Notes: generated from the letters alone by a model not told the origin. A DNA stretch of 64,000 nucleotides from Octopus bimaculoides (GCF_001194135.2 NC_068993.1:25453258-25517257), one strand, 5' to 3'; shown: positions 5,714 through 56,360, numbered from the stretch's first letter. Program-made: numbers and translations.

Positions 5714-5886
5714 TTATTGAGAAATGCTAACACAGTGTCTTTGATTCTTTGCTCCTGCAGCAAGTGTAGTTTTTCCAACAGGACATGGTTTGCAGAAAGT
5801 CTTCTCCCATTTGTTCTGGAAGGTCCCTATTGCACATGGCTCACAAACAGTGGCAGTTCGCCGGAAACTTCCTGGCTTACACATAT
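5714..5886 (-). CDS. Exon 14 (last coding exon): ephrin-receptor-like (GCC2/GCC3-type) cysteine-rich repeat, then TAA stop
   Basis: Acceptor tttctgacag at 5887-5888. Reads (D)MCKPGSFRRTATVCEPCAIGTFQNKWEKTFCKPCPVGKTTLAAGAKNQRHCVSISQ*, with C.PC..GTFQ.......C.PCP.G.TT...GA.....C. Stop at 5714-5716. Confidence 0.93.
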
Positions 5887-7009
5887 CTGTCAGAAATTGA
5901 AAGAATATTTAATCAATACATACAGAATCAACATAGGAAATATGGTCAACATAATAAAACATTAAGTAAACTCATAATAATTGCAGATAATGAACATAAT
6001 AAATGTAAACAAATATTGATAATTAGATATAGATATTTAACATTTGTTGACCAAATCAGCATAATAAATAATCAACATCATAATGTATTTTATAAACTAC
6101 ATTATAAATCTTAAACTTGGTGGTAGCACTCTGTTCTGCAGTATACAGTCACTGATACTCTATTCCACTATAAATATGGTGTATCAGGGAACATATTGTA
6201 GATGTACAGCGAAAGATTTCAGTTGTAATTGTAATAAATATATACCATTACAAAATTTGAAGAAGTGAATATAACTGTACATGTGTATTTCAAACTGATA
6301 TCCTGACTCTCCACTAATGCAATTATAAATGACATTTGTCCACTAAAGCAGAAGTGAATTATAATGTATATATAATATAAAAATATATAATTCTTAAAAT
6401 GTATATAAAAAATTTTTAAATGTTACATTATTATATATATTTATATATATTGGTAATAAATAGATATAAATACATAAAAATGATTTATAGTAATAATGAT
6501 AATTGTTGTCATCATCATCAACATGATACAAGGCCAGCAATTTTGAATCATCATCATCATCATTTAATACTCGTTTTCCCTGCTGGCATGGGTTGGACAG
6601 TTCAATTGCAAACTGGTAAGCTGGGGAGTTGCACCAGGTTCCAATCAGATTTGACATGGTTTCTACATTTGCACGAGAGCCTAGTTTTTTATATCTTTTA
6701 CCTATTTCAGTCATTTGACTGCAGCCATGTCGGGGCACAACTTTGAAGGGTTTTAGTCAAACAAATAGACGCCAGGACTTTTATTTTGAAAGCCTGATAC
6801 TTATTCTATCAATCTCTTTTGTCAAACCACTAAGTTATGGGGACATAAACACACCAACACCAGTTTTCAAGCAGTGGTGGGGGACATACGATGATGCAAA
6901 GACACACACACACACATAGAGATATATATATATATACATAAATATATATATATATATATATATATATAGTTAAAAAAAACAACAAAGTGAGGACGTGATA
7001 TGGATAGTA

Positions 7010-7310
7010 NNNNNNNNNNNNNNNNNNNNNNNNNNNNNNNNNNNNNNNNNNNNNNNNNNNNNNNNNNNNNNNNNNNNNNNNNNNNNNNNNNNNNNNNNNN
7101 NNNNNNNNNNNNNNNNNNNNNNNNNNNNNNNNNNNNNNNNNNNNNNNNNNNNNNNNNNNNNNNNNNNNNNNNNNNNNNNNNNNNNNNNNNNNNNNNNNNN
7201 NNNNNNNNNNNNNNNNNNNNNNNNNNNNNNNNNNNNNNNNNNNNNNNNNNNNNNNNNNNNNNNNNNNNNNNNNNNNNNNNNNNNNNNNNNNNNNNNNNNN
7301 NNNNNNNNNN
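7010..7310. other. Assembly gap (N run); other gaps at 2739-2748, 25765-25774 and 49884-50222
   Basis: N characters in the sequence; an exon hidden in a gap cannot be excluded. Confidence 1.
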
Positions 7311-8947
7311 TCATTGTTGATCCCCAATTCATGATCTCAAATGAAACACAAAATAGTCTATACATACATACGCACACATATACACACACACAACAGACTA
7401 CTTTCAGTTTCCATATACCAAATCCACTCACAAGGCTTTAGTTGGCCCAAGGCTATAGTAGAAGACACTTGCCCATGGTGCCATGCAATAGGACTGAACT
7501 TGGAATCATGTGGATGGGAAGCAAGTTTCTTACCACACAGCCACTCAACTCCAGTACTTCACAAGTACTTTATTTTATCAACCTCAAAAGGATGAAAATT
7601 GATCTTGGCAGGATTTTAACTCAGAGTATAAAGACCCAGAACAAACACTGATGTTCTGGTAATTTTGCCATTTCAAACAATCCTTTCTATTATGAGCACA
7701 AGGCCTGAAATTTTGTGGGGAGGGGCGACTTGATTACATCGACCCCAGTGCTCAAATGATAGTCATTTTTATCAACCCCAAAAGAATGAAAGGTAAAGTC
7801 AACCTTAGTGGAACTTGAACTCAGAACATAATGACATGAGATACTGCTAAGCATTTTGTCAGGCATGATAATAATTCTTTCTACTGTAGACACAAAGCAA
7901 GAAATTTTGAGGGAGGGGTAAGTCGATCACACTGACTCAAGTACTTGACTGGTACTTAATTCATTGACCCCAAAAGGATGAAAGGCAAAGTTAAGTTGAC
8001 CTTGACAGAATTTGAACTCAGTCGACTTCAGTGGAATTTTAAAGACACGAAATGCTATTAAACATCTTGCCCAGAGTGCTAACGATTCTGCCAGCTCACA
8101 GTGTTAATAATAATAATAATAACAATAAATGCATGTAAAGCATGAGCAAAAATGAGTGAATGATGAAGCCTGTACACAAGCAAAGATCTTATTGATAGCA
8201 AGGACATTTCTCAAGAGTTGAAAGATTAATAGTGTGTGAAGTAGGAAAACAAGATTTTGGTAGTTCCAACTGTAAGGAAAGAACACTGATGATAACTCAA
8301 ACAGGAAAGAAACTTGATATAATAAAGTATTTATTAATGTTTCTGTTATATTTGAGAAATTTTGATTGAGTCGGAGAGGTTGCTCTTTTTAAAGATGGAA
8401 TACATGGTAGCATACTTTTAAAAGTTGAGATAAATCTCTGTTGAGCGAAAGACCGAAAAGCTAGGTCTTGAGGAGTGCATTGTCTGAGGGTAATGGTAGA
8501 AACATTATCATGACCAGTATCTTATTTGTTAATGATGATCAGAGATGTGTACATTTTGGTGAGACAAGTAGATTACAAAAGTACAGCTTTGGGAAACAAA
8601 TTGTTGTCTGAGTAGGCTTTGGGGCTGGATGTAAAATGAAGAACATCAAATTCCAAACCAGCAGAAGTGGGGCCAACACCATCACCACTACTTCTGTCAT
8701 CAGCATCGTACTCCCCCCCACTCTTCCATCATCATCATCATCATCACTGTCGTCGTTGTCACCACTACCAACAACAACGTTTTATGCCCACTTTTCCATG
8801 TTAACGGGTTGAATGGTGTTTTATTGCTGCATGCTCTTCTTACTGTCAACTGTTTTACTCACCTTTCACAACATATGGTGTGTCTATTCTAAAACTGGGA
8901 TACACATAGCATAAAGCAGTAATAGAAAAAAGAAGAAAAGCATTTAC

Positions 8948-55126: not shown

Positions 55127-55318
55127 CTTCACATGAAACATTTTTCTTTGACCAGGAACCATCTTTTAAACATCTAAAAGTTGAAGATGCAGGCAAACGG
55201 AAACCTTTGCGACATTTTACTTGGCAGCGACTCCCTAGTTTCATTAAAGGGTCTTTTAAGCATCTCTGATTTTTGACAATAGCATTTTCTGGTACTTGAA
55301 ACTTGTCACAGAATTTAG
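55127..55318 (-). CDS. Exon 2: sushi/CCP domain (CCP-1, six-Cys type)
   Basis: 192 nt, phase 1-1; ttccacag / G|gtaaat. Reads (A)KFCDKFQVPENAIVKNQRCLKDPLMKLGSRCQVKCRKGFRLPASSTFRCLKDGSWSKKNVSCE, with the C..G..C...C..GF.L......C...G.WS....C pattern. Confidence 0.95.
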
Positions 55319-56237
55319 CTGTGGAAAAAAAATATTTAAACATATTCAAGATAGTTAGTTCACATAATTAATGTTTGGTTTCAGTTTTGAATTCTTTGCT
55401 TTTATTTATTGAAATTTGTAGTAATCAAGTAGTAATAAAGCAACATTGAATATGTTGTCAATGGAGAATATGGCCCTCAATCAGTAGCATTGCTAGAGTG
55501 TGCCACCTGGATCAGCCCTTGAATGTATTCCCCCCAATCCACCCACCTTCAGGGAACTGAAGCTGATATAGGCTAATACAGCAAACCAAAAAGTGTCACC
55601 CCACAAAAGTGCCACTTAGCAGTGGGAAGGAACCCATCTCACCTCCTCCCCAACTACACTGCTGTCACAGATATCAGGTGGAAGGAGTTGTTGTTGTTGT
55701 TTAGTTCCAAGTAAACCCTGATTCAACAGACTTATGAACAATAACGCCCCAGCTATAACTGCCATCTGTTTGCATTTTAAAGATGCTATTGTTCACTATG
55801 TTCTTCCCTTTTCTTAAGAAGTTATTTGAGAGAGACTTAATTGTTATTTATAACCCCTTAACCAAGCTTGTAGAGGCTTCCTATTTGCTCCATTAGAGCA
55901 ATAAGATTACATGTTATTTCATGCCACTCTGAAAAGCATTAGCTGTATAAAATGTTTGGCGATTCAATGATTATTTTTAAAACTTTATCTCCAGTTTTAA
56001 ACTGAACAATATGAAATATTTCAGAAATATCAAAAATGATTTCATAACAATTTCTGAAACTCTGCATTTTATTTTAACAGTTTGATTTTGAAATTCAATT
56101 AAAAGAGCCAATATATTCAACACTTTACATGTTAAAAAAATCTAAGTAAGTTTTAAATATTTCTTCATACATATATATTCTTAGTCAAACAAGATAAAGG
56201 AATATGAATAAACTCAACAGAGAATCAGTTTATTTAC

Positions 56238-56360
56238 CTTTACATGAATATCCATCAGGATTGAGAGTGAAACCAACTTTACATTTGCAGAAATAACTCC
56301 CCTTCGAATTGACACAAATATGTTGGCAGCTGGCATTTTTCTTCTCACATTCATTGATAT
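56238..56360 (-). CDS. Coding exon 1 of 14 in window: calcium-binding EGF domain (EGF-1) of a multidomain EGF/CCP/HYR protein
   Basis: 123 nt, phase 1-1; acceptor tgtttcag, donor G|gtaaat. Reads (D)INECEKKNASCQHICVNSKGSYFCKCKVGFTLNPDGYSCK, with the D-x-N-E-C and C-x-N-x4-Y-x-C cbEGF consensus. Confidence 0.95.

Follow-up and report, generated by a model that had tools for sequence, protein, structure and literature searches.

SVEP1/polydom is a matrix ligand of cell-surface receptors in which a VWA domain precedes a block of CCP and HYR domains, and CCP and HYR domains are present in Drosophila Frac as well. According to PMC5305246, Frac is an extracellular matrix protein that contains multiple EGF domains; its processing depends on Mmp2 and controls the BMP-dependent targeting of motor axons (PMC5305246, PMC10628440). 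We analyzed a gene built from the same kinds of modules in a 64 kb stretch of the Octopus bimaculoides genome (GCF_001194135.2 NC_068993.1:25453258-25517257), called hereafter the window, within which all positions are counted. The gene encodes the domain order (cbEGF-CCP)x4-CCP-HYR-HYR-CCP followed by one ephrin-receptor-like (Eph-like) Cys repeat. With a probability of roughly 0.7, we consider that it belongs to an ancient, widespread and poorly named metazoan family of secreted matrix-type glycoproteins, and that it carries a serially copied unit made of a cbEGF and the first CCP of that family.

Frac and SVEP1/polydom are the nearest analogues that have been studied, and the likeness of SVEP1/polydom is only partial. 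An SVEP1-type protein of 3585 amino acids (P0196) maps as (378)-SSS-HH-S-...RRR-EEE-... followed by a long CCP array (E, S, H and R standing for cbEGF or EGF, CCP, HYR and Eph-like modules), and the occurrence of a CCP/HYR/HYR/CCP block with Eph-like repeats, stated for SVEP1 in the original prediction made on this DNA, is seen directly in this SVEP1-type protein. SVEP1/polydom shares with the octopus model the CCP-CCP-HYR-HYR-CCP block and the Eph-like repeats after it. However, the block is N-terminal in SVEP1 and is followed by several Eph-like repeats, EGFs, a pentraxin domain and about 30 CCPs, whereas in the model it is C-terminal, with a single repeat and the stop after it. Before the block, P0196 has about 378 residues without any cbEGF, where the model has cbEGF and CCP modules; Pfam found no VWA match in the model, and all that stands upstream of the block within the window consists of cbEGF/CCP modules. 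Two further likenesses are found at the domain level only. Selectin CCPs are six-Cys modules. In E-selectin an EGF adjoins CCPs (PDB 4c16 match), and in fibulin-7 (P0295, P0296) a Sushi domain lies upstream of the (cb)EGFs, but unlike the model neither selectins nor fibulin-7 show a repeated alternation, an HYR or an Eph-like repeat. A sequence search of the PDB returned no solved HYR-containing relative, only generic CCP and cbEGF structures, and a literature search on octopus HYR/sushi proteins returned nothing relevant.

Gene structure

The A+T content of the window is about 64%, and four runs of N are present (2739-2748, 7010-7310, 25765-25774 and 49884-50222). Cys-rich open frames were picked from a stop-to-stop frame scan, and every AG and GT was listed with its phase in each frame. 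All open frames encoding EGF, CCP, HYR or Eph-like modules were on the minus strand, and the phase listing yielded a single consistent chain of 14 minus-strand exons, from 56360 down to 5714. The spliced exons total 2318 nt, i.e. 772 codons and a TAA stop at 5716-5714. This independent rebuild is identical to the original prediction, and the domain order proposed there agrees with both Pfam and a family profile. The latter was built from the C-terminal blocks of 15 family members (alignment A1; 433 positions), with no window sequence included. The 14-exon chain is a real and well-formed gene. All 28 splice dinucleotides are canonical; a pyrimidine tract lies upstream of every AG acceptor, and all donors are GT, mostly GTAAGT-like. 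No stop or frameshift interrupts the 772 codons over the 14 exons, and the structural Cys are all kept in the 13 modules. Introns at module boundaries are all of phase 1, the only intron inside a module, that of HYR2, being of phase 0. As had been proposed, the CCP donors end in ...G and the following cbEGF exons start with AT or AC, so that the Asp of the D-x-[DN]-E-C motif is restored at each CCP-to-EGF junction.

The first eight exons encode the four alternating pairs. Exon 1 (56238-56360) carries cbEGF1, which begins with DINEC, between a phase-1 AG acceptor and a GTAAAT donor (EGF hidden Markov model, HMM, E 8.1e-18; Pfam EGF_CA at residues 1-40); the G of its Asp codon is supplied by an exon beyond the window. 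Exon 2 (55127-55318) encodes CCP1, a six-Cys module of the family's first-CCP type (CCP HMM E 6.7e-19; family profile 2-64, E 6.3e-15). Next come exon 3 with cbEGF2 (46150-46269; EGF HMM E 1.7e-19) and exon 4 with CCP2, which is 53% identical to CCP1 (44272-44463; family profile 2-64, E 8.5e-16), then exon 5 with cbEGF3 (42233-42355; EGF HMM E 1.4e-19) and exon 6 with CCP3 (40765-40965; CCP HMM E 1.3e-15; family profile 2-64, E 1.6e-14). The last pair is made of exon 7 with cbEGF4, the counterpart of the last cbEGF that precedes CCP-CCP in the family (33817-33939; EGF HMM E 2.5e-19), and exon 8 with CCP4, which occupies the family's first-CCP position (30719-30916; family profile 2-63, E 3.3e-17).

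The remaining six exons encode the C-terminal part. CCP5 (exon 9, 28258-28449) takes the family's second-CCP position (family profile 66-127, E 1.8e-14). HYR1 is divergent and entirely contained in exon 10 (14841-15083), matching the family profile at 134-207 with E 9.9e-10, within an alignment of 213.6 bits. HYR2 is split between exon 11 (13722-13855, with a phase-0 donor; HYR HMM 1-49, E 2.7e-18) and exon 12 (9755-9860; HYR HMM 48-80, E 4.7e-12), the latter (9860-9755) being the sole one to encode an HYR second half among the phase 0 to 1 AG...GT open frames listed in that intron. After the HYR pair, exon 13 (8948-9145) encodes the divergent CCP6 (CCP HMM E 1.2e-07; family profile 292-350, E 1.1e-06). 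Exon 14 (5714-5886) carries one Eph-like repeat of the GCC2_GCC3 type and the TAA stop (Pfam Ephrin_rec_like E 1e-09; family profile 381-432/433, E 1.2e-11), which falls six residues past the last Cys of the repeat.

On the whole model, Pfam reports four EGF_CA (E 2.8e-24), five Sushi, one HYR (residues 570-648) and one Ephrin_rec_like domain (residues 725-767). HYR1 and CCP6 are below Pfam reporting, and both are recovered by the family profile. Per exon, E-values of the module HMMs range from 1e-7 to 1e-28, well beyond chance. The four cbEGFs begin with DINEC, DVNEC, DIDEC and DINEC, all of which fit D-x-[DN]-E-C; between Cys3 and Cys4 all four contain C-x-N-x4-[FY]-x-C, in agreement with the cbEGF consensus C-x-[DN]-x4-[FY]-x-C.

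Completeness of the exon set was examined by tblastn, with the model and 120 homologues as queries, and by running the HMMs of the four module types against open reading frames (ORFs) of at least 15 amino acids on both strands. Beyond the 14 exons, no further EGF, CCP, HYR or Eph-like exon was found on either strand of the readable window sequence. No module exon was detected in the 7.6 kb upstream of exon 1 (56361-64000), where an Eph-like/EGF hybrid spacer search was also made, and no Eph-like, EGF or CCP ORF in the 5.7 kb downstream of the stop (1-5713). Scans of the window for tRNA and against Rfam gave no matches. Because exon 1 begins in phase 1 and no exon was found upstream of it, the 5' part of the gene lies beyond the window, as the original prediction had it; the window carries the 3' two-thirds of one minus-strand protein-coding gene, which encode the C-terminal 772 residues.

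Three of the N runs are inside the gene, in introns 2 (49884-50222), 9 (25765-25774) and 13 (7010-7310). Their distance to the nearest exon is 1.1-10.7 kb, and the two long ones are bordered by (AT)n or (CA)n microsatellites. Since the gaps are deep in introns, frame continuity is independent of their length; since the module exons are all of phase 1-1, a gap could nevertheless conceal an extra in-frame module exon. The order of modules across the second and third gaps (CCP5 then HYR1, CCP6 then Eph-like) is the conserved order of the family, which counts against a misjoin there.

Two repeats lie close to exons. A (CA)41 microsatellite (40657-40739) starts 26 nt downstream of the exon 6 donor (40765), where length polymorphism near a splice site is possible. 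In intron 7, a 207-bp unit repeated 1.9 times with 80% match (33255-33652) lies 165 nt downstream of the cbEGF4 exon.

The parent family

A search with the whole model returned many proteins of 1100-1340 amino acids, with 97-100% query coverage and the same Pfam set. Architectures of relatives were mapped with the module HMMs, for about 310 related proteins in all. The family layout is [CCP...]-cbEGF run-(Eph-like/EGF hybrid)-cbEGFx3-CCP-CCP-HYR-HYR-CCP-one Eph-like-end, and members map as ...EEE-SS-HH-S-R, terminating there or soon after. Such members were found in the scorpion Centruroides (P0001), the tick Ornithodoros (P0032, P0297), the sea spider Pycnogonum (P0040, P0280) and spiders (P0007, P0014, P0034, P0041), and in the acorn worms Glandiceps and Saccoglossus (P0005, P0024), crinoids (P0022, P0029) and sea urchins (P0015, P0065 and P0023, the Strongylocentrotus purpuratus protein XP_030837016.1). 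Ornithodoros turicata XP_064481556.1, Pycnogonum litorale CAM1319731.1 and Glandiceps talaboti LOC144438649 are examples identified by record. In the cnidarian Hydractinia (P0114, P0308) the same core continues into a second Eph-like repeat, after which come about 108 more C-terminal residues. Database labels of these proteins are 'fibrillin-like' (fibrillin-1/2-like), 'SVEP1-like', 'SCUBE2' or 'uncharacterized'. Fibrillin and LTBP have TB (eight-Cys, PF00683) and hybrid domains among their cbEGFs. The TB domain is missing from the Pfam domains precomputed for the SS-HH family members, and Pfam gave no TB match in the model either; the 'fibrillin-like' names reflect cbEGF content only.

The octopus model is collinear with these proteins. 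By BLASTP, its residues 1-768 align with the C-terminal parts of relatives up to their ends, for instance with 531-1309 of 1337 in P0005 and 476-1190 of 1198 in P0001. The family profile matches model residues 385-715 with 213.6 bits (E 2.6e-67); the last exon corresponds to its positions 361-432/433. Each single module matches the profile at its positional counterpart, HYR2 at 210-289, and the whole C-terminal block of 414 residues shows 24-31% identity to family members. The place of the stop also follows the family: P0001, P0013, P0019 and P0032 end 2-5 residues past the last Cys of the terminal repeat, and P0040, P0005, P0022, P0024 and P0029 end 10-40 residues past it. Most full-length relatives inspected have a signal-peptide-like hydrophobic N-terminus. 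In the six relatives scanned, no transmembrane-like window was seen downstream of the N-terminal signal region, and none was seen in the model. The original view that this architecture corresponds to no standard family has therefore to be abandoned: a widespread metazoan family, already automatically annotated under misleading names, has this block as its conserved C-terminus, and the end after a single Cys repeat, taken as an oddity, is normal in that family and found in several members.

Insects and copepods keep the layout as far as HYR-HYR. Insect relatives such as Musca domestica XP_011292947.1 (1812 amino acids) map as CCP-long cbEGF run-CCP-CCP-HYR-HYR; unlike the model and the family, they are without the final CCP and Eph-like repeat and contain long inserts. 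Gastropod fibrillin-like proteins (Gigantopelta, Nucella, Aplysia, Biomphalaria and others) have a cbEGF run with Eph-like/EGF hybrids and end with cbEGF-CCP-CCP. They show 28-32% identity to model residues 1-489 and, unlike the model, lack interleaved CCPs. The idea that these proteins ending at CCP-CCP are truncated models of the same gene was rejected in Gigantopelta: the next gene lies 0.6 kb downstream of the locus concerned (L001), no HYR, CCP or Eph-like exon occurs within 10 kb, and the end is genuine.

Origin of the interleaved CCPs

The cbEGFs preceding the CCP pair are contiguous in the family (at least three), whereas in the model a CCP stands after every one of the four cbEGFs and no uninterrupted run is present. 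CCP1, CCP2 and CCP3 each match the family's first-CCP position (profile 2-64), as does CCP4, and CCP5 matches the second. Pairwise identity is 53% between CCP1 and CCP2, 45% between CCP2 and CCP3, and 34-36% between CCP1-3 and CCP4; EGF1-3 are 59-65% identical to one another. In a neighbour-joining tree of these short domains, drawn without bootstrap support, ((CCP1,CCP2),CCP3),CCP4 form one clade among first-CCP domains. As copies of the CCP4-type module, CCP1-3 agree with the growth by module duplication proposed originally. Their match to the first-CCP position together with their clustering indicates serial copying of a two-exon [cbEGF + first-CCP] unit, and the simplest history would be a serial duplication of this phase 1-1 unit, copied three times. 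Judging from these identities, the duplication is old enough for substantial divergence, and all structural Cys have been retained; CCP1-3 keep their six Cys, the Trp and open frames.

Strict cbEGF/CCP alternation (ESES-type) was found in 0 of the about 310 mapped relatives. The original prediction would have been overturned by an architecture widespread in other bilaterians: this is what we observed for the core, and not for the strict alternation. At the level of the sequence, the only unusual feature of the gene is the presence of three extra CCPs between the cbEGFs, the C-terminal block being conserved.

Weighing of the explanations

Several observations weigh against assignment to the family as proposed here. 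The CCP-CCP-HYR-HYR-CCP block of the model is 26.7% identical to that of P0196 over 356 amino acids (121 bits), within the 105-155 bits obtained with the family. Since identity over this block gives no clear margin, the assignment rests on the flanks, i.e. the cbEGFs before it and the single repeat and stop after it. Between the positions of CCP6 and the Eph-like repeat, family proteins have a two-Cys linker of some 25 residues (profile 352-380), to which nothing in the model corresponds; no credible phase 1-1 mini-exon for it was found in readable intron 13, and the linker may be absent or located in the 7010-7310 gap. No orthologue above about 33-35% identity was found among proteins no longer than about 1.75 times the query, the range to which the searches with the whole model, its C-terminal 348 residues and the CCP1-to-CCP3 segment were confined; the longest proteins listed had 1347 residues for the 772-residue query and 474 for the 276-residue query, and the 348-residue query listed none. 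With whole-model matches thus reaching about 1351 residues at most, the lack of cephalopod matches is uninformative, as a longer cephalopod orthologue would be invisible, and so is the empty listing for the 348-residue query. A search of representative proteins with the family profile yielded the SVEP1-type comparators and, in its best 150, no orthologue: all were giant CCP/HYR proteins of up to 6952 amino acids. The link of the insect members to Drosophila Frac (frac, CG7526) is putative and based on the domain content of the latter. Lastly, the gene model was drawn from genomic sequence; the N-terminal third, with any signal peptide, lies beyond the window; and the module exons are all of phase 1-1, so that each could be skipped or used alternatively without loss of frame.

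This last property leads to a reading in which the exons of CCP1-3, possibly along with some of those encoding cbEGFs, would be cassettes or alternatives: the main mRNA would be of the ordinary family form and the alternation would be minor or exist on paper only. Skipping any of these exons keeps the frame, and the model without CCP1-3 gives exactly the family pattern EEEE-SS-HH-S-R. However, CCP1-3 have kept six Cys, the Trp and open frames at 34-53% identity, which implies that purifying selection has long acted on the coding sequence. The strength of their splice sites equals that of the remaining exons, and alternative use would still leave them functional; we regard this reading as unlikely. 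The exons could also be part of a larger gene of the SVEP1/polydom type, in which the stop at 5714 would be bypassed through a weak phase-1 donor at 5734 and further exons would lie beyond the low end of the window. The block is about equally similar to P0196 and to the short family, in SVEP1 the CCP downstream of the HYR pair likewise leads on to Eph-like repeats, and a phase-1 GT does exist at 5734. But the SVEP1-type block is preceded by about 378 residues devoid of cbEGF and not by cbEGFs, the last exon of the model matches the final 50 positions of the family profile, with its stop at the same place as in family proteins, the donor at 5734 (GTGTTA) is a poor site, and the 5.7 kb downstream contain no Eph-like, EGF or CCP ORF. 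Such a continuation is very unlikely.

A chimeric model would be slightly less probable still. It could result from a misjoin at a gap, from two adjacent tandem paralogues read as one gene, with ES repeats in the upstream copy and E-SS-HH-S-R in the downstream one, or from exons hidden in gaps that change the architecture. Three gaps of estimated size are indeed present in introns 2, 9 and 13, introns of 6.8-13.2 kb could accommodate gene boundaries, and the linker that family proteins have ahead of the Eph-like repeat is lacking at an intron that contains a gap. The order over the second and third gaps is, however, exactly that of the family, and strand and phase are common to all exons; the phase-1 start of cbEGF4 precludes its being a first exon, and family members always have several cbEGFs upstream of the CCP pair; the microsatellites flanking the long gaps are the usual cause of gaps in short-read assemblies. 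Finally, that the locus is a decaying pseudogene copy whose open frame is a remnant is hardly credible: the introns are rich in transposon debris and both HYR1 and CCP6 are divergent, but 772 codons without stop or frameshift, canonical dinucleotides in 28 of 28 cases and structural Cys kept in 13 modules all point the other way. Membership in the family, with serial copies of the two-exon unit, remains the reading that we retain.

Predicted function and significance

The product is likely to be a matrix or adhesion protein that is secreted, glycosylated and stiffened by calcium; we infer its secretion, as we do the rod mechanics, the binding role and any biological process. In all four cbEGFs the consensus motifs for Ca2+ binding and Asx hydroxylation are complete. 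The junction between a cbEGF and the CCP before it would be stiffened by Ca2+ bound at the N-terminal end of the cbEGF, and a series of such junctions would yield an extended rod or stalk. On this rod the CCP-CCP-HYR-HYR-CCP-Eph-like head could be presented as a surface to which partners on cells or in the matrix would bind. Within the window, over four cbEGFs at least, (cbEGF-CCP)x4 takes the place of the cbEGF run found before the CCP pair in the family. We put forward only tentatively, as a possibility that may well prove wrong, that in this lineage a homotypic cbEGF rod has been replaced by a constitutive, strictly alternating cbEGF-CCP rod with repeated Ca2+-dependent CCP-to-cbEGF interfaces. 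If this is true, the spacing, flexibility or partner binding of the conserved head could change, and the gene would offer a natural test case for the CCP-to-cbEGF junction as compared with the well-studied cbEGF-cbEGF junction. The alternating stalk may also continue upstream, beyond the window.

The importance of these results is modest: the gene reveals no new kind of protein but a known family member with a lineage-specific stalk variant. The block usually associated with SVEP1 serves in addition as the conserved C-terminal end of a distinct old family, distributed from cnidarians to echinoderms and arthropods, which automatic annotation mislabels as fibrillin, SVEP1 or SCUBE. Drosophila Frac supplies the only functional data for this family, provided that the insect members are Frac. 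The gene is in addition a clean example of exon shuffling, in which a phase 1-1 two-exon unit is copied and the codon of the Ca2+-ligand Asp is regenerated at each junction.

Repeats and transposon remnants

The introns contain remnants of several transposon classes. In intron 9, a decayed long terminal repeat retrotransposon pol, broken by stops and with a gag-like CCHC region, occupies 17415-19866 on the minus strand; its aspartyl protease lies at 19414-19671 (PF13650/PF00077) and its integrase zinc-binding region at 17799-18221 (PF17921). The intron between CCP3 and cbEGF4 contains, on the minus strand, reverse transcriptase fragments of a non-long-terminal-repeat element resembling long interspersed nuclear elements (36900-39900; weak RVT_1 at 37486-37758, E 1.5e-4) and, on the plus strand, a mariner/Mos1-type transposase remnant (34200-34950; HTH_48 at 34380-34604, E 2.6e-05). 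ORFs near 49435-49647, within 49265-49650, have no Pfam match, and their kinship to the element at 36900-39900 is a guess. Another ORF (32284-32676) is weakly Pif1-2B-like (E 0.0066, under the family cutoff) and may be Helitron debris.

A dispersed element of about 160 bp, resembling short interspersed nuclear elements, is present in at least 13 copies of 71-87% identity, in both orientations, all intronic or intergenic. The copies lie at 151-480, 581-676, 1842-1992, 7390-7546, 10850-11014, 12524-12682 and 24308-24433 in the low part of the window, and at 31185-31338, 31541-31749, 48528-48627, 51072-51217, 51908-52001 and 52461-52533 in the high part. ARAGORN detected no tRNA-like head in this element, and Rfam gave no match. 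Downstream of the gene, at 2140-2875 and 3395-3771, two copies of another repeat have a common ORF (MPFSNGAAVR..RRVKRRSRFGRSS...) with no Pfam match, the first copy being broken by the 10-N gap at 2739-2748. In the intron upstream of exon 1, a minisatellite cluster (57032-58376) yields long spurious ORFs on the plus strand; it is composed of 18/36-bp units (57032-57227), a (GA)n-rich segment (57355-57668) and AT-rich units of 28-30 bp (57996-58376). A telomere-repeat-like (TAGGGT)7 array is found in intronic sequence at 38859-38902, surrounded by inverted copies of the flanking sequence (ORFs 38372-38941 on the plus strand and 38811-39146 on the minus strand).

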